A DNA stretch of 64,000 nucleotides from Oculina patagonica (Eukaryota), in contig NC_135760.1 of assembly GCF_052425735.1 (NCBI RefSeq), positions 14,322,001 to 14,386,000 on the forward strand, written 5' to 3'. The position numbers and the translations under genes are program-made. Below the pieces are notes generated by a model, which was given only the letters and a program-made list of their open reading frames with translations, did not search any database and was not told the origin of the DNA. This document shows, in pieces, positions 18,020-64,000 of the stretch. Positions within the stretch are counted from its first letter, which is position 1. Each line of letters starts with the position of its first letter.

Positions 18020-21000
18020 ATGACAGAGCAAGACGATACTAGAGCAAGCGCTAAGAATCTAGTTGCGAATGACGACAAGGAAGAAGCAGAGCAACTGACA
18101 CCCGCGCAACGAAAGAAAGAGAAGCGAAAGATCACCAAGAATGTGTACATCATTAGCTTGGGTTTCCTGTTCCTCTTCACCGCCTTTCAATCGCTTCAAA
18201 ATCTGCAGAGCAGTTTGAACAAAGTAGAGGGCTTGGGTCTATGGTCACTGAGTATAATTTATGCCGCACTGATCCTGTCGTGTATTTTCGTCCCGCCGTT
18301 TGTGATCGGACGACTTGGCTGCAAATGGACGCTGGTGCTATCCATGACAGGCTACGTTCTGTACACAGTGGCTAATTACTACGCTAGGTGGGGAACTCTT
18401 ATCCCTGCTTCTATAATAATCGGTAAGTGCATAAAGGAAAAGTGAATTAAGGAATGCTTATAGTTTTATGAAAAACAAACTACTATGGGGCCACAGAGCC
18501 ACAGGTTTGTTACCTCTGTGACACCCTCAGACTGACTGACTGACTGACTGACTGACTGTCTCTGACTGACTGACTGACTGTCTGACTGACTCTGACTTAC
18601 TTACTGACTGTCTGACTGACTCTGACTTACTTACTGACTGTCTGACTGACTCTGACTTACTGACTGGCTCTGACTTACTGACTGACTGTCTGACTGATTG
18701 ACAGACGGACTGGCTGACTGCTGATGATTGACGGACGGACTGAAGAGACGATGATCATTTGCGATTTTTGGAGCGAACGCATTTTGATTGGGTAAACGCA
18801 ATATGCTAACAAATTACTTAATAACAAACAATGAAATTACAATGACGACTGTCTGACTGATTGACGGACGGACTGTCTGAATGATTGACGGACGGACTGG
18901 AGAGGCGTTATGATCATTTGCGTATTTTTGCGAGCGAACGCATTTTGATTGGGCAAACGCAACTATGCTAACAAATTACTTAATAACAAACAATGAAATT
19001 ACAATGACTGACTGTCTGACTGATTGACAGACGGACTGACTGTCTGACTGATTGACTGACTGACTGTCTGAATGATTGACGGACGGACTGGAGAGGCGTT
19101 ATGATCATTTGCGTATTTTTGCGAGCGAACGCATTTTGATTGGGCGAACGCCATCTTGGATTCGCACTCGGGAGAAGATCGGGGAGAGAGGAGAAAACGC
19201 GTCTCAGGGAGTAGAAGTTGAGCTGAATCCAAGCCTCTCTCCGCCCTCATCCAACATGGCGGCGAATCTACTCGATTGCGCGAGCTACTACTGAGAACTG
19301 GAGCGCCCACGGAAAACGCCCGCACTGCAGGCTACACACACCACGACGATTTGAACGTTGGCCCTGCGTCGGAACAAAGAGATCATTTGCAACGCAGGCT
19401 ACCCCTTTAGCTAATCGAAAAAGCTCGTACCTCCACGTGTTAAAGGGTGATAACTAGAAACGATTCGCCCGTCAAAGGTTCAAGGATGCAATAATTGAAC
19501 AACTATTGCGGTTTCTCCTAGATACTCAAAAGGGCACACGAGACTCTGGAAAGTGGCAACTCGGAGGTAGATATCCGTTGCTTTAGCAGCTAAGATTTAA
19601 TTTCTTTTTTTCTTTTTTTCAGGTATTTGTGCAGCACCTCTTTGGTCGTCCAAATGTGCCTATTTGACCACTACAGGAATTCGCTACTCGCAGCTGAGCC
19701 GTGAGACGCAAGACGCAGTCGTAACTCGATACTTCGGCATTTTTTTCCTGATCTTCCAGAGCGGCCAGATCTGGGGAAATCTCATCTCGTCTCTTGTCCT
19801 TCAGCAGGGAATGAAGGACACCTTCCGTGAGAACGCTGCCGAAGTGTGTGGCGCGCGCTACTGTTCCGCGCCCCCTAAACTGACCAACGCGACCGACGAG
19901 TACGACCATAAGCTGGTTATCAGACTGTTGAGTATATACGTGGGGACGGGCGTGTTCGCTGTGCTGTTAGTGATCGTGTTGCTGGACCGACTCACCGGGG
20001 CACTGGACCGAAGAAAGGAGCAAGAGTCTGGCGTGAGTCTGCTGATCGCCACTTTAAAACACTTGAAGGACAAGCGCATGCTTCTGGTGTTACCGCTGAC
20101 CATGTTTAGTGGACTGGAACAGGCCTTCACGTTTGGCGATTATACCGCGGTAATTCATTCATTCCTTTCATTCATTCCTTCCTTCCTTCCTTCATTCAAA
20201 CATTCCTTCCTTTCTTTTCTTCTTCCTTCGTTCCTTCCTTCATTCCTTCCTAATATCAGTCAATGTATTTAAAGATTCATTCTCTATTTCTAAATCTCAT
20301 TTTAGTCTATATACAGGAGTTTCAAAAGTTCCGAGACAATTTTAGGGGCTCAAGTTGTTTCGCACATGAGCGTAGCCTTCACAAAACACCAGCGTGCTAA
20401 CACTCTCTTCACTTCTAAAAGATTTGACGCGGAAGATTGCCTTTAGTTAGCAGTATCATACGTAAAGAAATTAAAAACCCTGCATCGCCGAATACTTTTT
20501 CCGTACCCATAAGATTTGACGCTGACCAATAGAATCAAAATTATTTTGTTTAAATAATTCAGATGCTATGCGTGTTAAGATTCGCCGTTTAGTACCTTGT
20601 GACAATATTGTCATGCTTTCAGTGGAATAAATATAAAATATCTATAAAATACAGACACCAAATACTCGCTATGAAACTTAATGTTTGCAAAGAAATTACT
20701 TCTATGGATCAACCAAATGTGTCTCCCGGGCGTAATAAATTAAAGCTACAAGCAAACAAGATTAACTTTAAAAATTGTTCAGCCCAACAATATTTCAAAA
20801 AATCATATCGCAATCCGTTGCAATCTTTGTCGCTTTTGGCCATCCGTACATTCTTTTGTATTAGGTGTGTTACTGAAATGTTCCTTCGCTGTTTTAAGAG
20901 GTTCTTTTTTATATTTTAACGAATTTGATGGTCTTTTCCCATTCCTAAATTTAGCAAAAATCCGTGACAAAGTCCGCTTTAAAGAGGCTTGACAGTATTT

Positions 21001-50221: not shown

Positions 50222-52973
50222 ATGTTTCGTCTACAGATCGAATTGCCTCATGTAAGACAGAAAACAGAGTGGGACTGCGGATTGGCATGTTCCCTAATGG
50301 TGCTTCAGAAACTTCTAGGGAACAAGTTCGACAACGCCGAATACGAAGAAATTTGTGCTGGGAAGAATTTTGGAACCAGCGTTTGGACCATAGACATTGC
50401 CAGCATATTAACGGAATATAAAGCAGACTACGTTTTCTGTACAAAAACTCTGGGCGTAGATCCGAGCTATGGACAAAATGCGTTTTACGAAGGGACGTTC
50501 AGTCTTGACGAAACTAGAGTGAATCGCTTGTTTACACTCGCACCAACTTTAGGACTGAAAGTCGAGAATCGGTAAGTTCTTGTCATTGGGTGAATACAAT
50601 GTTGCTATACTTAATTTTTTTTTACAGAGTTTTACACAGTCAGCTCTCGAACGTAAGATTTCTTCGCGTGACAAAGCAAAAACTGCAGCGTAATTTTTCA
50701 TTGACCGGTTTGACGTCTTTTGACGTGTACATATTTTTATTTTTTACTACAGTATATATTTACGTTGGGTTCTTCGTAAGAGGTTACAAAATCTCAATCC
50801 TGAATTATTTTCAGTCAGCTATTCAGTTTTTGACTATGAACGGGCTTATGCTTGTCCAAAATTTTTCAATCTGGAGGGAAAATAAAACTACGTGACTGAG
50901 TGCAGGCCGATGGACGTGTTGTGGCTTATGTACATTATCAGTCATTGACCTCAGTGTTAAACAAACTACATGCATTATTACGAGGGGTCATGAATTAGCC
51001 TGCGTAGCTGGCGGTAGTTCCCTCTCAAAGCAAGCACTCGCACTCGAATCCCGCAAGTTACGCAGGCTAGTCATGAATGGTCCCTCAAAATGTCGCAGTG
51101 CTCGCAATGCTCGCAAATGCTCGCCAAATTTTAGTGGGTGCTCGTTTGCTCTTGCTCGCACAATTTTACAAGTGCTCGCATGCTCGGTTTTTAGTGAAGG
51201 TAGGTTTTTGAAAAGTGCTCGTTGCTCGCAAGGCTTGTCAATGCTCGCTCGCAAAGAAAAACGCTGTGCTCGCATGCTCGCAAAGACCATTTGATACCCC
51301 TTATACGTATATACCCGGCGCATATCCATCGAAATAAAGTGGCAAGGGTCAATACAAGATAAATTGAGAAAAAATCTAAGGGGTTTGCCTATTCACATGA
51401 TTCAGCTTCAAGGGTGGTGAGGACACGGTGGTCTTACTAAATTGTTGTTGTATTTTCAATTGATAGTTTGATCAAGGATTAGCTTTAACAGAATGAAACC
51501 AGGGGGGGGGGGAAGCAACTTCCCATACATTCTCTTATATGAAATCTGAGCGATGCTCTCACAACTTGCAAAGCAATCATCGGGGCGGTAGTCAGCGGAT
51601 GTCTCTAAGGCGCATGAGCAGCTCCTTTCTTTGTGAACTTGCCAAAACAAAAACAACATGGGACCAGTGAGAGAGTTCGATTTTTTTATATATGTAGTAA
51701 TAAAAAAGAATTTCTAAGTTTTGTCTTTAAAGCAGCGAAAATTTCTCCGGAAAGGTTCTTGGTGTCAATATGTGGTGTTTGTTATGAAATAAAACCATCA
51801 CGGGAATGGTAATGAAAACGTGTCGATCGAATATTCCCGCGCTGGTCGGAGCTATTGTTCTTGCTCTATTGTTTGAGGTTGTTTGTTGACTTGGTCTTTC
51901 TTTGTTTTACTTCATTTACAATCCCCATGTGGGCCAGTTGAAAATCGTGGTACAAACATGTCAAACATTTGCATTTCAGCACTGAAAAGTAGCACGGCAT
52001 CACAAAATTCTGCAACGATGACGAAATTTTCGGATTTAAACACGCTGCTTTTAGATTTTTAGTTAAGAGAATTGAACCCCTTTATAATAAGTGATTCCAC
52101 GACAGCAGCTTCCATTTCGCGGGAAAAGATTGCCTGTTGCATCATCGTCCAAAAACCGCTGACTACATCGTGAATTGATCGCTTTGCAAGTTGTGAGAGC
52201 ATCGCTACTCGGTCCCAGACCTCGTTTCTTCCCCCCCCCCTGGAATGAAACATTACATGCCTGAAAGCAAATTCAGGATAATTTAGATTTTTCTCTTTAT
52301 ACGGCGCTAAACTTATGTCTCCAATAAATTTGTGTCATCCCAAAAACAGATTTTTAAAATGTTTTGGGGGTACTTTGGTCTAAAATATGGGGTAAAGAAT
52401 TTGACAATTTTGGTTTGTAAAGGGTATGGTTTTTGCACTCTGTTTTTGCACACTATTTTATTCAGTTTCTAGCATGTTCATCTCAAAAGATTGAATAGAG
52501 CGGTTTATTTAACTTGAGGAATTTGAAGCCTTCTCAAGTGTTTAACCTTAGAAAAAGGTCATGTGAGCTTATCTGTTGTTTTCATTTCTTTCAGGAGTGT
52601 TTCATTAGAGGAGATCATTTCAAGATTATCAAAGGGCTATGTTGCCATAGTACTGGTCAATTCAAATGCGTTGATCTGCAACTGGTGTGAAGTCTTTTCT
52701 CCAATTAAACTGCGGATGTTTACCAACTGTATATGTCCATCAAATGGGGATGATTACTGTGGTCATTATATAGTGCTGTGTGGATTTGACGCTGACAAAC
52801 GATGTGTTTATTACAAGAATCCTTCATTCAATGAAGGTCTTTGCTGTGCAAAGTTTGATATGTTTGAAACAGCGAGGCACAGTTATGGAACAGATGATGA
52901 CATTGTATTTGTTAAATTGGAAGAACCTGAACTTATGAAGGAGACATTTATCAGTACTGATAACAAAATATGA
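50222..52973 (+). CDS. GUCD1: GUCD1 (Guanylyl cyclase domain-containing 1 / C22orf13 family). Exons 50237-50571 and 52595-52973; start is either the ATG at 50222 or an upstream exon at 49423-49485
   Basis: Motifs LPHVRQKTEWDCGLAC, SVWTIDIA, YCGHYIVLCGFD, YKNPS, ARHSYGTDDDI. Confidence 0.88.
50996..51069. mobile_element. 74-bp TAGCCTG mini element with 9-bp TSD, nested in the end of a CTCGC-repeat MITE (~50983-51301)
   Basis: TAGCCTGCGTA ... TACGCAGGCTA; TSD GTCATGAAT. Confidence 0.8.
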
Positions 52974-54935: not shown

Positions 54936-57600
54936 TTACAGCTTAGCTGAGGGGTTATCCAGCAACTCATATGCTGGAAGTGTAAGAAACTCTTCAAACT
55001 CCTCAGACAGAACCAACTTATCTAAAAGTTGTGAAGCCTGTCCAAACCGAGCTTTGTTTGCTCCTCCTAGTTTATCAAGCTCTGCTTTGTGCATTGTCTT
55101 GTACAGCTCAGAAGTGAATGGACGACCATCCTCAAGCTGCACACCATGGCGCAGCCACTGCCACAGCTGAGCTCGTGAAATTTCAGCTGTGGCTGCATCT
55201 TCCATCAAGTTGTTAATAGCTGCTGCTCCAACACCCTGTTAGAGGGAAGAGAAATATGACAAAGGTCAGGAATTGACTAACATACTGGTGTGTTACAGTC
55301 AATACTCAGCGTGTGCCGCCTAGAATCAATACTCAGCGAACGGATTGCATTTTTCGTTTCAGATATTCAAATATAATTTTAAATATTGTAGAGCATCCAA
55401 CCGAGAACATGTGAACACGTGAACCTGTCAAAAATTAACCAATTTGATTGGTTAATTTTTGACAGGTTCATGTGTTTATGGTTGGATGACCTACAGTATT
55501 TAAATTAAATTTGAATGTTTGAAACAAATAATGCAATCCGTTCGCCGTTAATCAAAACTAGTCCGGATTCTAGGCGGCACACGCTGAGTATTTTGACTGT
55601 AAAGTGAAGAGACTTTTGATGATGATCATATAATTTTTGGTAGCCCCTTGGTATCAGCCACACCCCCTTCCATTTAAAAATCCAGGTTCTGCCCCTGTCA
55701 TAAAAACTTTGTCACAATCATCTCTTTTGCACCTCTTTGAATTTATGCGACTAGCCTATTGTAGTTTTCCCGATGGCTCTTCCAGTTGACAACAGATACA
55801 GTAATCGGAAATGCAATATACAATGCATAGCACAAAAATCAGTTTAGGCAAAAAGGTCATTCTCTCTAGCTTTGTCAGTAGACCCTTTTGCCCCCAGATT
55901 TCCCTTGGCTGTTTTTCCACTCAAATATTTGGTATCAGATATTGGCCTATCCTGATTCACAGGTTGGAAAAAAGCTGTCACTGGTAGGTGAAAATGAACT
56001 ACTGTAAACAAAAGAAATGGTCATCTTAAAACATTACCAACAGCCAGCTGTTCATATACTGAAGTGCCACGCTGATGTTGACTCGCACTCCATCCTCTGT
56101 GATGGTACCTCCTGGTACTGAAACTGAAAGGATTTCTTCTACCTTGACGTTCACTTCCTCACGCAGACGATGTTTTTGATGACAAGCTCCCTGCATACCC
56201 TACAATAACAAGACCAAAAGGTGGTTAATAAATATGTGGACCTACAGACCCATTCTAAATGGTTCAGTGTTTGCCTGCGCTAACTTATCTTCATTTGATA
56301 AATATGCCAACTTGATCCAAATATTTGAGAAAAAAAAATCTTTTATTGTGAGGGAAACATTGTTGTCTTTGGCTGATTAAAACAAATCACAGGTCGGAAT
56401 ATGACTTCAGATCATCAGAAATGTTTTGAAGTCTTGGGAAATCTTTGACATCATCAGAAATAATATTGTCAGGCCATCTTCACTTTCAGGATAAAAATCT
56501 CACGCATGTGACTCACAGCAACTTGGTGGGTACGTACTAGTGTCTTCAAAAAAAAATTGGCGAGGGGAATTTTTTATTAATAAATTTTAAAAATCTGAAC
56601 ATTTCATACCTTCACGAAGATCTCCTTTGCAAAAGGTACAAGGTCAGGGTGTGCCACCCAAGTGCCGTCAAATCCATCAGCCACCTCTCGCTCTTTGTCT
56701 TGACGAACCTTTTCAAAAGCCATCTTATTAACATTCTCGTCTTTTCGACTTGGAATAAAAGCAGCCATTCCGCCCATTGCATGAGCACCATGTTGATGGC
56801 ATACTTGGATAAGGCGTTCTGTGTAAGATCGCATGAACGGTACCATCATTGATACCTGCCAAAGGAAAAGAAATAGAATTCGCATATTGTTTCCATAATA
56901 TAATAAATGATTAATTCAAAAGAAAAAATAGTTCACTAACTTAAGGTAGAGTAACATTGATAAAGCTGATAATAAACCCCAACAAATAATAACCCCAAAA
57001 ATGGTTACAAATAAGGAAGATTGATACAGATTCCAAACACACAACATGAAAAATTTACCCTAGGCTAAATTTTGTAAAAATATTATGCGCCGTCATTGAA
57101 ATCTCTTTTGGAAAAGCCAGAAGAAAGCAAAAAGTAAAGGTTGCGGAGTGGTGCAGAACTTAAGCGTGCATTTTTATTATCTATAAAATAAGCCTTGTTA
57201 TCTTAATATAACTTAACCAGCACTATATGCATGTTTGTAGTCATGCCACTCTCGGACATTGTAAATGGCACAACTTGATATGACCATTCCATACAATACC
57301 TGCTTACGATCTGGTAAAACACAATCAGATTTTCTTGAGAATCTTTTAATTGCTGAAAATATGTAATCCCATCTTCCTGCATTCATTCCACAGCAGTGCT
57401 CCCTTATCTCGTAGAGCATTTCTTCCAAGTTAACTCCTGCAAGCAGGGTTTCCACCATAACAGTAGCACGGATGGTTCCTAAAAAAATAAAACAAGTACA
57501 GTAATTTATTATGTTATGAATTGCCTACCTGTTAGCATGCCTAGGCTTTAAATATTTTAAAAATCTATAGCAAAAAGGGTTACACCAAAGAGTAAACTAC

Positions 57601-57645
<45 letters not shown>

Positions 57646-59874
57646 CCATCATTATTTATTTGCCACTTTTGAAATGACATAAATTTTACAACAGTTACTA
57701 TGGTAAGTAGGGAGAGGAGACCTCTTAGGAAACCAACAGGCTTTAATATAGGGGATGCCACCTTGGTTTGCAAAATGGTACTGGTATTGGTAACATACCA
57801 ACTGTCCTGTAAGTGAAGTAAATGAAGAAGCGTTCTCAAGTTGAATTCTCGGAAAAAAGATTTTCCGAGTTCCCCCAACGGGAGTTGAACCCATGACCTT
57901 CCAAGATGGGTTCGACTCCCATTGGGGGAACTCGGAAAATCTTTTTTCCGAGAATTCAACTTGAGAACGCTTCTTTATAATTTTACTTCACTTTATCCAA
58001 GTTGCCATTTCACTTAACATGTCCTGTAAGTATTGTTATATTTCAAGTAACTTCAATCTACAACGAAACTAACTCCCTCTTCAGATCATTTTGCAATGCT
58101 TGCAAATAAAAGTCACAGGAAACATTCCCCCCCCCCCCCCGTCCCTTCCCATGAGCTTGCTTGATCTCTTGAATAAGCACAACCAGCTAATAAAAGAAAC
58201 TTACCTTGAGGTACTTTCATGTAATCCTGTGCTGATTTAAACACATCATTCCACAGCCTTGTTTCCTGGTGAGTTTCCATTTTAGGAAGGTAATAGTAAG
58301 GAGCAGAACCACTGGCAAGCCTTATATGGACATTGTGAAAAAAGTACAGTCCAAAGTCTACCAGCGCTCCACTCATGGGTTCTCCATCACACAGGATATG
58401 TTTCTCATCAAGATGCAAGCCACGTACACGAACTAACAGACATGCTGTCTTGTCCTTCAAACGACGCTCTGATCCTAATGATTTAATAATTGAATTTAAT
58501 ATATACAAGGGCTCATGTAGCATGCATTAGATTAAATGCTATTGTTGGTTTTTCTCTACATTCTCTGGATTCCCTCCCTCCACAAAAACCAACACTTTAC
58601 TTATAACAAATTCTAATTTGAACTGAAAACAGTGGATGAAGAGCAACTCTGTGTACATATGTCACTGCAAATTTTCCATTTTATCTATTTATTTATTTAT
58701 TAATGGTTGATCTGAACATTTAAAGTCTATGTCACAAAAAAAGAAAAATGTTCTGCTTTGAGATGAAATTTAACTAATGTTAATGCAATTTATTGTGGCC
58801 CAGATTTCACTTTTTAAAAAGCTTTTTAGAAGCAGTAAACACAATATTTTCCACGCCCAGGCTGTTAAAAGTGTGGATAATGCAACAGGCCACTGAAAAA
58901 ATCAAGATAGTGTCAATAAAAAATGAAGGTAGTGATTTATCCAACCATTGCCCACCCTTCAAATAGCAGGGGCCAATCTACTGTGTCTTCTGAATACGGA
59001 CTTGCACCATAGTTAGTAACTATGCTTGCACCTACCATCAGCATTAGTGAAACTAATCGTCTTCTTGTTTGCGTCTAACAAGTTGATTTGTCCCTCAACA
59101 ATATTCTTCCAAGAGGGAGTGAGTGAATCTTCAAAATCAGCCATGTACATGTCGGCGCCACTGTTCAAAGCATTGATAACCATCTTACGATCCGTTGGCC
59201 CAGTGATCTCAACGTGTCGCATCTGCAAGTCATGAGGAACCGCTGCAACCTTCCACTCTTTCTCATGATGTGCTTCGGGGTATCTGATTGGCTGGCCACT
59301 ATTGATTGCTTCTTGAAATTCTACCCGTTTTTTGAGCAGCTTCTTCCTCTGGTAGTTAAAACTCCGATGCAGATCGGCTAAAAACTCCAAAGCTTCATAG
59401 GACAGAATCTGAGCATACTCAGGCTTAACTTCACCAGTGATTTCAATTCCTGGTGATAAAGGTAAGAAATTAAAATATTATAACAAAGTTTAAAACAATT
59501 TCAGGAATTTCTAGAAAAAAAAAATACATGACTTTTTGGCTGTTTGCCTGGCCTGTTCCAGGCTCTCGGTTTGTGGGGAAAGAGCGAAAAAGCGGGGCGA
59601 GCGAGCGCTCGTCTTTTCTGCGCTCGCCCGCTTTTTCGCTCTTTCCCCACAAACCGGGAGCCTGGAACAGGCTACTGTTTGCCAGACCAAGTTAATTAAT
59701 AACTACAAAACGATAATAAAAACCTATAACAAAACATTATAACAAAAGTAGTAAAATAGCTATCAATGAAAGTTTTTTCTCTCAGTAATATTTATTTAAT
59801 TTCCTGGCAATCCATCATTAAAAAAATATCAAAATGTGTTTAAACTCTATTAGCTCACCTTTAGGACACCTCAT
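54936..59874 (-). CDS. Malate synthase (MSA/aceB type) with C-terminal PTS1 (AKL). Exons 59859-59874, 59036-59449, 58205-58474, 57300-57478, 56610-56855, 56038-56199, 54936-55235
   Basis: Motifs [90 protein letters not shown]; ends ..PSAKL*. Confidence 0.96.
55294..55601. mobile_element. TA-flanked palindromic MITE in malate synthase intron 6
   Basis: TACAGTCAATACTCAGCGTGTGCCGCCTAGAATC ... GATTCTAGGCGGCACACGCTGAGTATTTTGACTGTA; near-perfect central palindrome at ~55444. Confidence 0.85.
57600..57652. repeat. (ATC)n microsatellite
   Basis: Seen directly. Confidence 0.95.
57827..57973. repeat. Inverted repeat made of tRNA/SINE B-box fragments
   Basis: GAAGCGTTCTCAAGTTGAATTCTCGGAAAAAAGATTTTCCGAGTTCCCCCAA and its reverse complement surround GGTTCGACTCCC. 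Confidence 0.75.
59549..59674. mobile_element. (T)AGCCTG mini element with 9-bp TSD in malate synthase intron
   Basis: GCCTGTTCCAGGCTC ... GAGCCTGGAACAGGCTA; TSD CTGTTTGCC. Confidence 0.8.
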
Positions 59875-61147
59875 TGTTTCTTTTCTTGGAAACTATGGGG
59901 AAATAACAATATTATGAACACAATTTTAGTACAAATTAGTGCAGTTATTGTGTAAGTACAGCGATAGTGTAACAAAGAAAATGTCAGCAAGTTACATGCC
60001 TTTTGTATGTAATTATATTGTCAGTTCTTAAATCTTGGATACATTTTCATCAGAAACATCTCAAATTGCCTTCAATAAGGTGGATTTTAAAGTGGAACTT
60101 TAAAGTGAGAAAGAAACGTTTAAATTAAAATCAAATACTAGAAAATTCAGTGTCACTTTTTTGGGGGGAGGAGGGGGGAGGTGGGGTCAGGAGGTCTGTA
60201 CTTCTTAAACAACATTTTGAAAATCTTCCGAAATCTTTGGAAAATGTTAAAAACATAGTAGGTTTATATAATAAACAGAATGATACATGGTTGCTTTGAG
60301 ATATGAAATTTATCTTCTTCCTGTGTTCAAATCGATATCTCCCTCATTCGCTGTGTCATTCGTGAGATATCGATTTGAACACTCCAAGATAAATTTCATA
60401 TCTTTGTGCAACCATGTATTATCCTCTACGTATGTGTTGTTGTAAAGGTGCAATACTGAAAACCGGAACTTATAAGTCATGATAACTTTAATATTTGAAC
60501 AAGGGGTTGGGCAATCAATATCCAAAAAGTTAATATCCCAGGGATGACACGGCAAAATCAAACAAACTACCATGCAAAGCTAAAAAGCTGCAAGAATGAC
60601 AAGAGGAAGAAAAATTCGTGATCATTCCTTTCTAAAAACATAGAATGGTCCCTAAAAGCACTACCTTTGGCAAGTAAGCTTACATGAAATTTATATACAA
60701 CTCAACAATCGTAGTGTCCCCGATTAGTAAGCTTAAGGCTAGCTAGAAGACTAGACACTTAAATTATTATTATTATGTCGTGACTTGTCATGTACAGCTC
60801 ACTGACTTCCAATTAGTTTTAGTGCGCTAGCTTGAATTTATTCACGTAGTAAAAATCAAAACTTGTTCAGTTTTCCAACATGAACGTGGAGGGTTTCTCA
60901 GTGGGTGGACTGTTTTGATTTTGGAGATAAAAAGTAAAGAATAAATTCGAGCTTGTATGACACGTGACAGTCTGTAACACGTTGAAAACAAAGATGCCGC
61001 AGCAAAATCAAAGATGAAGGAAACATAAACAGACCATTTAGACAAATCCTAACTTTTCTTCGTTACTTACGGACAGTTGCAGAGTTCTGTGGAGGAGGAA
61101 ACTTGCGTTTAACCCCAGCTTTTTTCGACAAGAGAGGCTGATTTAGG

Positions 61148-61755
61148 TGAAAAGATCGTCCGACTTGAAATTGCCTCGTTTTTGTGTAAAGTACAAGGTC
61201 CACTGGGGTGACACGGTGGGGGGCGGGTACTAGGGTAACGCTGGTGGTGTGACTAGGGGTGTGTGTGTGTGTAGCGATACAAAGCACAATATAACAAGAA
61301 TAGTTCTCTTTCAGTCTTTGACAGTGTTAAGGACTTCATTTTGTAAATATATTCAGAAAGAAGTTCTCTACGTGCAGTTATGCACAGTCCCTTAGGAACC
61401 AAGCCATTAATTTTGCTACCCGTCAAGATATTGGCAGAGTTTGATTTGGATAAAAAGATCGCCCAATTGGAAAATTGCCTCGATTTTGTGTAAAGTACAA
61501 GGTCCACTCAGGTGACTTGGTGTGGCAGAAACTAGGGTAACGCTGGGGGTGTGACTGGGGGTGTTTGTAGCCGGCGGCTTGGCCGCTATAAATCGCGAAT
61601 AAAACAAGAAATATCGTTCTCTTTCAGTCTTTGACAGTGTTTAACATTTCATTTTGTGATTTTTTTCAGTAAACGTTCTGTAAATCTCTACATGTGCAGT
61701 CTGGCACGTTCCCTTAGCAACCAAACTATTTGCAACCCGCCAAGATATTGCATCA
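61148..61755. repeat. Diverged ~300-bp tandem duplication in the MS-ICL intergenic region
   Basis: Both units carry AAATTGCCTCG..TGTGTAAAGTACAAGGTCCACT..CTAGGGTAACGCTGG..GTTCTCTTTCAGTCTTTGACAGTGTT..CAAGATATTG. Confidence 0.85.
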
Positions 61756-61986
61756 GATTCAGGCAGAATAAACAATCGTTCGAAACTTTCGGCTAAAACT
61801 TTTCTGGAACTCCAGTGGATCTTGACTTTTAAATTTTTACAAATGGAAATTTTTGAAGCGTTAAATTGTTCTTTAAATTCGAACAATAAGTTTTAGAGTA
61901 TTCCCAAAGTTCGTGATTTGATTCATGTTCGCAAAAAAAATGAATGAAAGAAAAATTCGTGTTGTTTATTTGGATTTTAGCGTGCT

Positions 61987-62075
61987 CCAATGAAAACTGC
62001 CAATAGGACAAAAGATTGTCTTTTCCACCAATAGAAACGCCGCTTAGACAAGTGTTCAAAGTCCACGGGCATAAA
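61987..62075 (+). promoter_or_regulatory. Putative ICL-proximal promoter: three CCAAT boxes, HNF4-like DR1 site, CATAAA TATA-like element
   Basis: CCAAT at 61987, 62000 and 62028; GTGTTCAAAGTCCA at 62052-62065; CATAAAT at ~62070. Confidence 0.4.
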
Positions 62076-62200
62076 TTTACAAAACATTTGTAAATCTGAA
62101 GTTTGTTCTTCTTTAGTATTTTTACGGAGAAGCGTCTCCCTGAGTAAGGATTTCCAAGTCTACTAGAGTCGAGTTTTAAGTTTTTTCGATCTTTTTCACA

Positions 62201-64000
62201 ATGTATTCCAAACATCAGCGATTCGAAGGAATCAAGAGGAACTATAGCCCAGAGACTGTCGAAAAGCTCCGCGGTTCTTTAAAGATCGAGTACACTTTGG
62301 CGAGGCGAGGCACAACAAAACTCTGGAATTACTTGACTCGTGGAGGAAATTCTTACATAAACGCTATGGGAGCCCTAACAGGTAAGAAAACGTCGTTTTT
62401 ATCGGAATTCCCAGTCCGTATCCTCGATGTCTATTTTGACGCAGGGCCGAGTTTTTGCTCCACGTGAAAGCCACTCTCTTCCCAAATATGGTGAATGTTA
62501 CGATGTGGCGCGCAATTTGCTTGGGATTTTTCCGCGAGCGAGTTTGACAAGCTCGATCTCTTGAATTTAAATGCCTTTTCATCTTTTTTCACTAGTTTAT
62601 TGAAAATAACTCTAAAAAAAATTTACGATACGATTTTTTCACGGCCACGTCAACCCAAGAAAATCGAATGACGTGGAAATTTAGCGGAACGGCAAATGAA
62701 CTTTGGACTGAGATGTGAAAACCGGTGAAGACTGATGTGACTCGACAATTTTCCACTCGATTTCCTTTCAAAAACTTAAATGCCGACTTCAAAACAAAAC
62801 CGCAAAAAAATATTTTTAGATCGGATGAACGGACTAACGTTCAATGATCATCTTTACGGGAGGCGAATGACGCATTTTGACTCGATGGAATTCGACTCGA
62901 TCACCCTCTTAGATCGCATCGCATCAGGAAAAAAAAAAAAAAATAAGCTTAATTATAATGAAAGAAGACTTAACTTATCAAATCTAACACGATTTTTTGA
63001 TCTAATATTCTGGCAAAGTAGAAGGAAAAAAACTGAATAACTTTTTATTTATTTTTTTTTGTTAAAAAGAAATATATTGATTAAACATGTTTGTGATTTC
63101 AGGCGGCCAGGCGGTACAGATGGCCAAAGCAGGCCTAAAAGCCATCTACCTGAGTGGCTGGCAAGTTGCCGGGGATAACAATCTTGCTGCACAGACATAT
63201 CCTGATCAGAGCTTGTATCCCGCTAACTCTGCACCTAAGCTAGTGGAGCGTATCAATAATGCCTTCATCAGGGCAGACCAGATTGCGCACATGGAAGGAA
63301 CTGAAAAGCACATTGATTACTTTTTGCCCATTGTTGCCGACTGTGAAGCTGGATTTGGGGGACCACTGAATGCATTTGAACTCACTAAGTCCATGGTAAG
63401 TTCCTGGCTTTTAAAACTTTTATTGACCTACATGTACCTTAAGATTAAATTTTTATCTCCAAATATACCCTCATTTCTACTTCAACAGCTTTTTCTCAGC
63501 AATTAAAATTGGGTCACCAAATGCCAAGTGAAATGATCTGTGAAAGTTTAGCTTACTCTATTAATGATCACTAAATATTATGTTGACCGAAGAACCCTAT
63601 CAAGTTGTTGGTTGACGAATAAACAGGGGTGAAGATTAGGGTTAAGTCAAGTCAGTACCCTTAGTGCCAGCCGTTTTTGTTTGCTATGATCTTTCACACC
63701 TCTGGTATTTTATCAGTCAAGTACATTACTTACAGGTTAAAAAATAATTTTTGGCTAACAACTCATGACTTCTTTTGTCAACAGATTGCAGCAGGTGCTG
63801 CCGCCGTTCATTTTGAAGACCAACTGGCCTCAGAAAAGAAATGTGGCCACATGGGAGGAAAAGTTCTTGTGCCGACTCAGCAGTTCATCAAGGTGTTGAA
63901 TGCAGCTCGATTGGCTGGCGATGTTTTGGATGTCCCTATTGTCATTGTTGGCCGCACTGATGCTAACTCTGCCGCCCTGGTCACGTCAGATATTGACCCG
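62201..64000 (+). CDS. Isocitrate lyase (5' part; continues beyond right edge). Exons 62201-62381, 63103-63395, 63785->64000
   Basis: Motifs [83 protein letters not shown]. Confidence 0.96.

Follow-up and report, generated by a model that had tools for sequence, protein, structure and literature searches.

A spliced, divergent malate synthase and isocitrate lyase gene pair of bacterial type in the coral Oculina patagonica

The genes at the locus

The window, by which we mean the whole 64,000-nucleotide stretch of Oculina patagonica contig NC_135760.1 that was analysed, carries a malate synthase (MS) gene on the minus strand and an isocitrate lyase (ICL) gene on the plus strand, which point away from each other. 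An earlier reading made from the letters alone (the sequence-only reading) put the ATGs of the two genes at 59874 and 62201, about 2.3 kb apart; the measured distance is 2,327 bp. The features of the locus are as follows.

52563..52970, plus strand: exon of a Guanylate_cyc_2 (PF09778) gene, adjoining the 3' end of MS
54936..59874, minus strand: coding region of an MS1-type malate synthase, 7 coding exons, 528 aa, C-terminal -AKL
59874-59858, 59448-59035, 58473-58205, 57478-57300, 56855-56610, 56199-56038 and 55235-54936, minus strand: the MS coding exons
61071..61270, minus strand: 5' leader exon of MS, non-coding and joined in the mRNA to 59892, from an RNA joint and the depth table
61271..62097, no strand: region between the observed transcript 5' ends, 827 bp, GC 37%, CpG o/e 0.94
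61287..61294, minus strand: putative TATA-like element of MS, TTATATTG, with the MS RNA contig beginning 23 nt downstream of it
61987..62078, plus strand: putative ICL core promoter with three CCAAT motifs (61987, 62000, 62028) and CATAAATTT (62070-62078)
62201-62381, 63103-63395 and 63785-64000, plus strand: first three coding exons of an ICL of the bacterial short type, the third running past the window end

The spliced coding sequence of MS is 1,587 nt long and has one stop, the terminal one. The Pfam domains MS_N, MS_TIM-barrel and MS_C were found on minus-strand ORF pieces covering six exons, with E values down to 9.5e-33. RNA contigs from four runs back the introns 58474-59034 and 59449-59857, and the other introns of the coding region are placed by GT-AG sites and homology. 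The start codons of the sequence-only reading stand, but it had missed the leader exon at 61071-61270. The joint 59892/61071 has CT..AC ends and a depth of 754 in run X1, a near-identical joint is found in run X2, and the transcript starts at or beyond 61270, where the RNA contig ends. A scan of the leader sequence found no ATG within it and there are stops in frame upstream of 59874, which rules out a longer N-terminus encoded by an upstream exon. The donor region of the leader exon is conserved in Acropora (L015), where the 5' end of the NCBI model for MS lies elsewhere, and in a close relative (L004).

In most animals the members of this protein family belong to the ureidoglycolate-lyase 'UGL' group, which is distinct from the true MS group. 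Over its full length the 528-aa model can be aligned with the 530-aa bacterial MS A at 55-58% identity, compared to 45% for nematode MS, and the top match among solved structures is the Bacillus-type MS 3CUX. In alignments to 3CUX and 3CUZ the E in VET, the D in RWDY (GRWDY) and the D in MEDAATAE are conserved; going by the E. coli MSA structures, these positions would comprise the Mg ligands (E and D) along with the catalytic Asp. A profile search with the window exons scaffolded on nematode MS gave bacterial MS A for all of its best 120 matches, with no named cnidarian or other eukaryotic MS among them. By synteny the gene is orthologous to the Nematostella MS beside ICL (XP_001639526.2), to which it is ~60-80% identical. 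A Nematostella MS, which may differ from XP_001639526.2, falls in the MS group of the family tree, and recombinant Nematostella MS was found to be active in 2023, activity having been shown for Nematostella only (PMC10120013).

ICL was recognized by Pfam on plus-strand ORF pieces, and RNA contigs back both joints, 62381/63103 and 63395/63785. The end of the window cuts the gene, so that only residues 1-230 of about 425 fall within it; the "complete" pair of shunt enzymes described earlier is thus whole for the MS coding region and partial for ICL. The catalytic loop KKCGH at 63836-63850 aligns with solved ICLs and is intact, as had been noted. Exon 3 matches solved bacterial ICLs at ~100 bits against ~60 for fungal-type ICLs, and the orthologues, 420-430 aa long, are without the insert of plant and fungal ICLs. 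The window protein is 91-92% identical to Acropora ICL; the closest named bacterial ICLs are those of Bacillaceae at about 73%. In the tree the cnidarian-type ICLs fall into a single clade (SH-aLRT 100) placed among bacterial sequences, with the nematode ICL outside it. Judged from its sequence the enzyme is a bacterial-type isocitrate lyase with an intact catalytic motif.

An animal locus

Such proteins might suggest that the locus is a bacterial contamination or an assembly chimera: the identity to Bacillaceae enzymes is 70-74% for ICL and 55-58% for MS, and on L005 and L006, both bacterial contigs, ICL comes after MS. However, eight GT-AG introns lie within or between the coding exons of the two genes, and spliced RNA confirms four of these and also a fifth intron, which lies upstream of the MS ATG. 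The locus resembles the remainder of the window in GC content (38%); animal genes (UNC-93, an SH3 protein and Guanylate_cyc_2) are found on the same contig; and the same arrangement recurs in at least six other species, assembled independently. Splicing, composition, neighbours and multi-species synteny rule this explanation out, and we give it practically no weight. The window therefore does hold a multi-exon head-to-head pair in an animal genome on a non-chimeric contig, as the sequence-only reading had it, and synteny with Nematostella points the same way.

Conservation of the pair

The sequence-only reading proposed to check adjacency and orientation in relatives, and the pair is kept in those examined. 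MS(-)/ICL(+) is head-to-head in every anthozoan genome tested, that is Acropora, Nematostella, Xenia and the close relative L004, and also on two further contigs, L010 and L011 (ERZ25067901 and ERZ25067906). The composition of these two contigs is animal-like, not dinoflagellate, and in the tree their ICL is sister to all anthozoan ICLs. The survey covered contigs long enough for adjacency to be read; exon-sized matches on Logan/JGI/ENA contigs (L001-L003) are too short for this. The distance between the annotated genes is 1.19 kb in Nematostella, 1.0 kb in the octocoral Xenia and 2.4 kb in Acropora digitifera, and about 6.7 kb separate the two genes in L011.

The ICL introns at residues ~61 and ~159 are present in all lineages compared. 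MS introns at ~144 and ~234 are common to the window, L004 and Nematostella, and are likely to be present in Xenia, L010 and L011, where the alignment breaks at the same junctions. Guanylate_cyc_2 is the neighbour on the MS side in Nematostella too. The ICL side had to be compared via relatives because the window ends inside ICL: YdjC adjoins ICL in Nematostella, Xenia and L004, and PIG-S comes next in Nematostella, Xenia and Acropora. Neither YdjC nor PIG-S was found beside ICL in L010 and L011. The head-to-head arrangement of MS and ICL is a real and very old feature of cnidarians.

The sequence-only reading was not aware of any description of the physical linkage. This is at odds with the literature, as Kondrashov et al. 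(2006; PMC1630690) reported the 5'-5' arrangement of ICL and MS in Nematostella and Shinzato et al. (2014; PMC4083563) the ICL-MS1 pair in Acropora digitifera. The existence, orientation, synteny and bacterial affinity of the pair have all been published before, and the window therefore adds confirmation and detail rather than discovery. What the present analysis adds is the MS leader exon, the TATA-like box for each start, the Xenia pair, the L010/L011 pair and the PTS1-like ends.

Comparison with known systems

The A. digitifera pair (L015) is head-to-head as in the window, with the same intron positions, ICL 91% identical and MS 75-91% identical per exon. Its MS ends in -AKL, as in the window, and its ICL in -SKL. 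It belongs to a different species or genus, and the window has an extra intergenic tandem duplication of ~305 bp. The Nematostella vectensis pair shares the 5'-5' orientation, Guanylate_cyc_2 on the MS side, the ICL introns and PTS1-like ends, whereas its genes, as annotated, lie ~1.19 kb apart and its MS has fewer introns and ends in -PKL, a non-canonical PTS1.

The bacterial aceB-aceA (aceBA) operon, known from Bacillaceae and carried by the metagenomic contigs L005 and L006, also has the two enzymes adjacent; it provides the closest sequences and its catalytic motifs are identical. It is co-directional and co-transcribed and lacks introns and PTS1, while the coral genes are divergent, monocistronic and spliced, with putative C-terminal targeting extensions. 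The nematode ICL-MS (ICL-1/GEI-7 of C. elegans; P0152 of Strongyloides) is likewise an animal-encoded shunt of bacterial type in which the activities are physically linked. It differs in being one fused polypeptide of ~970 aa instead of two genes, with an MS domain 45% identical to that of the coral.

C-terminal ends and ICL paralogues

The MS C-terminus -AKL fits the PTS1 pattern (S/A/C)-(K/R/H)-(L/M). The window ICL ends beyond the window; its MS-linked orthologues end in -SKL, -AKL or -HKL. All MS-linked ICLs have PTS1-like ends and the unlinked ICL paralogues do not. On the basis of these C-terminal tripeptides, both enzymes are probably peroxisomal. No MS was found near the N-extended ICL paralogues, within ~9 kb in L007-L009 and within 8.5 kb in L017.

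The region between the genes

The RNA contigs end at 61270 and 62098, which gives a gap of at most 827 bp (~0.83 kb), contig ends not being mapped TSSs. With a GC content of 37% the region between the transcripts is not a CpG island. A tandem duplication of ~305 bp occupies 61133-61760, and most of it lies between the two transcript 5' ends. CATAAATTT stands 27 nt upstream of 62098, the earliest ICL RNA contig start (the run X8 contig 62098-62343), and L004 shows 73% conservation across the block 61981-62300. Provisionally, the two transcripts appear to start back to back, at most ~0.83 kb apart, from two separate putative core promoters; both this distance and the assigned TATA-like elements are provisional, as the starts are ends of assembled RNA contigs and not CAGE data.

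Regulation and maintenance of the pair

The sequence-only reading postulated an operon-like unit co-regulated from one shared bidirectional promoter. The transcripts are divergent with 5' ends at most ~0.83 kb apart, which is within the usual definition of <1 kb, and the annotated genes of Nematostella and Xenia are 1.0-1.2 kb apart. The pair also persists in L010 and L011, whose loci lack YdjC and PIG-S, and transcripts of both genes are present in all four RNA runs. These observations would fit one promoter, but each 5' end has a TATA-like box of its own (at -23 and -27), a lineage-specific duplication of 305 bp sits between the starts, there is no CpG island, and the genes of L011 are ~6.7 kb apart. 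The ICL/MS ratio of contig depth, a poor measure, differs ~20-fold among the four runs. In published expression data from Aiptasia, Porites and Acropora millepora ICL is induced while MS stays unchanged, and in A. hyacinthus MS is listed among the induced genes and ICL is not; paralogues may confound these data. Given that ICL and MS respond differently in the published work, we find no support for one bidirectional promoter that co-regulates both genes, and consider it unlikely. Enhancers common to both genes are possible.

One may also hypothesize that the adjacency is neutral synteny left over from the original insertion, with wholly independent regulation and no selection on the arrangement. 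Anthozoan genomes keep microsynteny well in general, and for this reason conserved adjacency need not mean functional coupling; the block from Guanylate_cyc_2 to PIG-S is conserved too, expression of ICL and MS is decoupled in several studies, and the intergenic length varies from 1 to 6.7 kb. It is harder to reconcile with the survival of the pair in L010 and L011 without YdjC and PIG-S beside ICL, with the loss of PTS1 from ICL duplicates outside the locus, and with the conservation of part of the intergenic region between acroporid-like corals. We find wholly neutral linkage somewhat doubtful.

A tentative alternative, to which we give a minor share of our belief, is that selection has maintained the divergent pair as a unit since before the origin of Anthozoa. 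The pair would persist with a PTS1-tagged ICL in a sister lineage (L010 and L011, possibly Medusozoa) where the neighbours on the ICL side differ, while every departed ICL duplicate would have lost PTS1 and gained a mitochondrial-looking N-terminal extension. If so, the two genes would share a regulatory region, its two TATA promoters <1 kb apart, that is tied specifically to the peroxisomal shunt, and many corals would have a second, undescribed ICL function at another location.

Origin and role

The glyoxylate shunt turns stored fat into sugars and C4 acids, a conversion that most animals cannot make, and in corals it has repeatedly been invoked for larvae, starvation, bleaching and disease. 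The explanation which we prefer, and consider highly probable, is that this coral has here its copy of the anthozoan MS1-ICL locus: aceB-like and aceA-like genes of bacterial type would have been domesticated before the hexacoral-octocoral split, and would have been divergent neighbours since then. The spliceosomal introns at shared positions, the short C-terminal extensions with PTS1-like ends and the promoters of eukaryotic TATA/CCAAT type would be the signs of this domestication. The products are most likely peroxisomal; ICL would split isocitrate into succinate and glyoxylate, MS would join glyoxylate and acetyl-CoA to malate, and the outcome would be net C4 carbon from lipid-derived acetyl-CoA. 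With two core promoters the genes may share upstream elements, yet would not be strictly co-regulated.

If the genes arrived together, an operon of the aceBA kind would be the candidate source. Earlier trees, in which the anemone ICL and MS group with different bacteria (PMC1630690), count against operon transfer, and the authors of the PNAS 2023 study prefer ancient eukaryotic presence to late transfer.

A stable, spliced pair with predicted peroxisomal tags is an aid to annotation and to the reading of expression studies; awareness of a UGL-type 'MS2' and of a second ICL type that is unlinked serves the same purpose.

The malate synthase and isocitrate lyase genes

The sequence-only reading had claimed genes for malate synthase (MS) as well as for isocitrate lyase (ICL) with start codons at 59874 and 62201. 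Pfam matches, spliced models and RNA contigs show that both genes are real and expressed, and that the start codons are divergent and 2,327 bp apart. On the minus strand MS_N, MS_TIM-barrel and MS_C were matched by six ORF pieces (54939-59390, E down to 9.5e-33), and on the plus strand the ICL domain was found on pieces from 62201 onward. The MS coding sequence was pieced together from GT-AG junctions, which gave a model of 1,587 nt and 528 residues with a single terminal stop and -AKL at the C-terminus. The ICL gene is cut at the window end (64000), with ~230 of ~425 residues inside and the KKCGH motif at 63836-63850.

Coding exons of the pair and exons of neighbouring genes
18020-20269, plus strand, exons of an UNC-93-like gene
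26202-27392, minus strand, exons of an SH3-domain protein gene
52563-52970, plus strand, exon of a Guanylate_cyc_2 gene, adjoining the MS 3' end
59874-59858, 59448-59035, 58473-58205, 57478-57300, 56855-56610, 56199-56038 and 55235-54936, minus strand, MS coding exons (GT-AG junctions)
62201-62381, 63103-63395 and 63785 onward, plus strand, ICL coding exons

The locus is animal, because its composition is that of the remaining window, its neighbours are animal genes, the MS-side neighbour in Nematostella is likewise Guanylate_cyc_2, and the ICL is 91-92% identical to that of Acropora. At 57600-57650 one of the MS introns contains a long stretch of GAT/ATC trinucleotides; a single frame of it translates as poly-Asp, and the repeat is non-coding.

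Conservation of the gene pair

ICL exon 2 was searched against a representative library and a long ICL exon against 90% clusters, after which genomic contexts were inspected. The head-to-head arrangement, MS on the minus and ICL on the plus strand, was found in Nematostella vectensis (two assemblies, 1.19 kb between annotated genes), the octocoral Xenia (1.0 kb apart), Acropora digitifera (2.4 kb apart), a close relative of the window species (L004) and two further contigs, L010 (1405-12090) and L011 (1-11601); in these genomes the proposed check of adjacency and orientation came out in favour of the pair. Of the neighbours on the ICL side, both YdjC and PIG-S are present in Nematostella and Xenia; YdjC is also seen in L004 and PIG-S in Acropora.

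L010 and L011 are animal-like (GC 36-39%, CpG o/e about 0.5, GT-AG introns). Identity between their ICL and those of anthozoans is only about 70%, and the tree places this ICL in the group that is sister to the anthozoan ICLs as a whole, the enclosing clade having an SH-aLRT of 100; the host may be a medusozoan. L011 also has an ORF with Galaxin repeats.

The ICL introns lie after residues ~61 and ~159 in all lineages compared. For MS, the window, L004 and Nematostella have introns in common at ~144 and ~234, and the exon translations of the Xenia, L010 and L011 MS break at those same protein junctions.

Transcripts and promoters

RNA contigs assembled from four public runs (three coded organisms) were compared with window 58000-63999. 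They support the MS introns 58474-59034 and 59449-59857 and the ICL introns 62382-63102 and 63396-63784, all with canonical ends on the expected strand. An additional MS joint, 59892 to 61071 (CT..AC), is contained in the same high-depth contig of run X1, a contig with 0 mismatches to the window, and run X2 has a near-identical counterpart of the joint. The joint leads to an MS leader exon of 200 nt (61071-61270), consistent with the RNA depth table. A search of the leader for ATG found none, and upstream of 59874 the reading frame is closed; the MS mRNA therefore has its first ATG at 59874.

ICL contigs start at 62098 (run X8, the earliest) and 62182 (run X4). With contig ends at 61270 and 62098, the observed 5' ends of the two transcripts are at most 827 bp apart, and the interval between them is AT-rich (GC 37%). 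A TATA-like element is placed upstream of each, and three CCAAT motifs precede the putative ICL element. These promoter assignments we infer from where the RNA contigs end, which need not be where transcription starts.

Putative promoter elements
61294-61287, minus strand, MS TATA-like element TTATATTG, 23 nt upstream of 61270
62070-62078, plus strand, ICL TATA-like element CATAAATTT, 27 nt upstream of 62098

A low-depth spliced contig from X1 (depth 13, GT..AG) joins 60571-60673 to 61670-61826 on the ICL strand and spans the region of the MS leader exon. This may be an alternative ICL exon lying upstream, or else a non-coding transcript.

Regulation

The sequence-only reading had also proposed that the two genes are co-regulated from one bidirectional promoter, and published expression data bear on this. 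In symbiotic Aiptasia ICL is up 3.9-fold with MS unchanged (Lehnert et al.), ICL rises without MS in Porites transcripts and A. millepora protein (Petrou et al.), and the list of strongly induced genes in diseased A. hyacinthus includes MS and omits ICL (Wright et al.). These data argue against tight co-regulation, a comparison which paralogues may confound.

Targeting signals and ICL paralogues

The MS proteins run about seven residues beyond the bacterial C-terminus, ending in -AKL in the window, Acropora and Xenia and in -PKL in Nematostella. In the other genomes every ICL adjoining MS ends in a tripeptide resembling the peroxisomal signal PTS1: -SKL in Acropora, Nematostella, L010 and L011, -AKL in L004 and -HKL in Xenia.

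A second stony-coral ICL lineage, found in Pocillopora, Stylophora (two copies), Oculina and Montipora (proteins P0182, P0184, P0189, P0201 and P0208), has a basic N-terminal extension and is without PTS1; the enzyme may belong to mitochondria or to the cytosol. Two loci of the same layout, L007 (9203-17395) and L008, each carry it as a pair of duplicates in convergent orientation, and no MS was found there within about 9 kb. A further N-extended group without PTS1 (P0238-P0304) comes from AT-rich (GC 33%) animal-like genomes and transcriptomes and has the same two intron positions; in its genomic example (L017:8571-11814) no MS was found within 8.5 kb upstream.

Origin

The nearest named non-cnidarian ICLs in the 90% clusters search are those of Bacillaceae (about 73% identity), and solved bacterial ICLs outscore fungal-type ICLs by far. 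The full-length window MS is 55-58% identical to bacterial MS A and 45% to nematode MS, its best solved match being the Bacillus-type structure 3CUX. Two high-GC bacterial metagenome contigs, L005 (8608-11408) and L006 (8873-11521), have an MS gene with a co-directional ICL gene after it; that ICL is 70% identical to the coral protein. It is plausible, given the Bacillaceae-like ICL, the bacterial-type MS and this gene order, that an aceBA-like unit would have been transferred from bacteria and then inverted. Published opinions on the origin of the cnidarian genes disagree; Bhattacharya et al. (2016) have both MS and ICL among their anthozoan transfer candidates. Apparent long-read frameshifts break both genes in L005 and L006.

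Relation to earlier descriptions

The linkage, which the sequence-only reading thought possibly undescribed, was already reported by Kondrashov et al. (PMC1630690), who wanted more cnidarian genomes to exclude an assembly artefact, and by Shinzato et al. (PMC4083563). Orientation, synteny and bacterial affinity are likewise published. Dembech et al. (2023; PMC10120013) found recombinant Nematostella MS to be active and Mg-dependent, and the other "MS" found in animals to be a ureidoglycolate lyase. What is added here are increments: retention of the pair in an octocoral and in the sister lineage, the MS leader exon, transcript starts about 0.83 kb or less apart as judged from RNA contig ends, separate putative TATA-like promoters, and PTS1 consistently with the MS-linked ICL only.

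Repeats at the locus

A ~305-bp tandem duplication (61133-61760; about 2.3 units, 76-91% identical) lies mostly within the interval between the transcript 5' ends, its first unit overlapping the MS leader exon; the matching L004 interval is about 260-300 bp shorter. A nested foldback element at 60277-60425 (inverted arms of 40 nt and 26 nt) has very high RNA-contig depth (805-1955) in all four runs, with many loose ends, and looks like a multicopy transcribed repeat belonging to neither gene. Inside MS intron 1, at 59551-59672, there is a near-perfect MITE-like hairpin (46-nt arms, 98% complementary, 30-nt loop), which is present at low depth in the RNA contigs.
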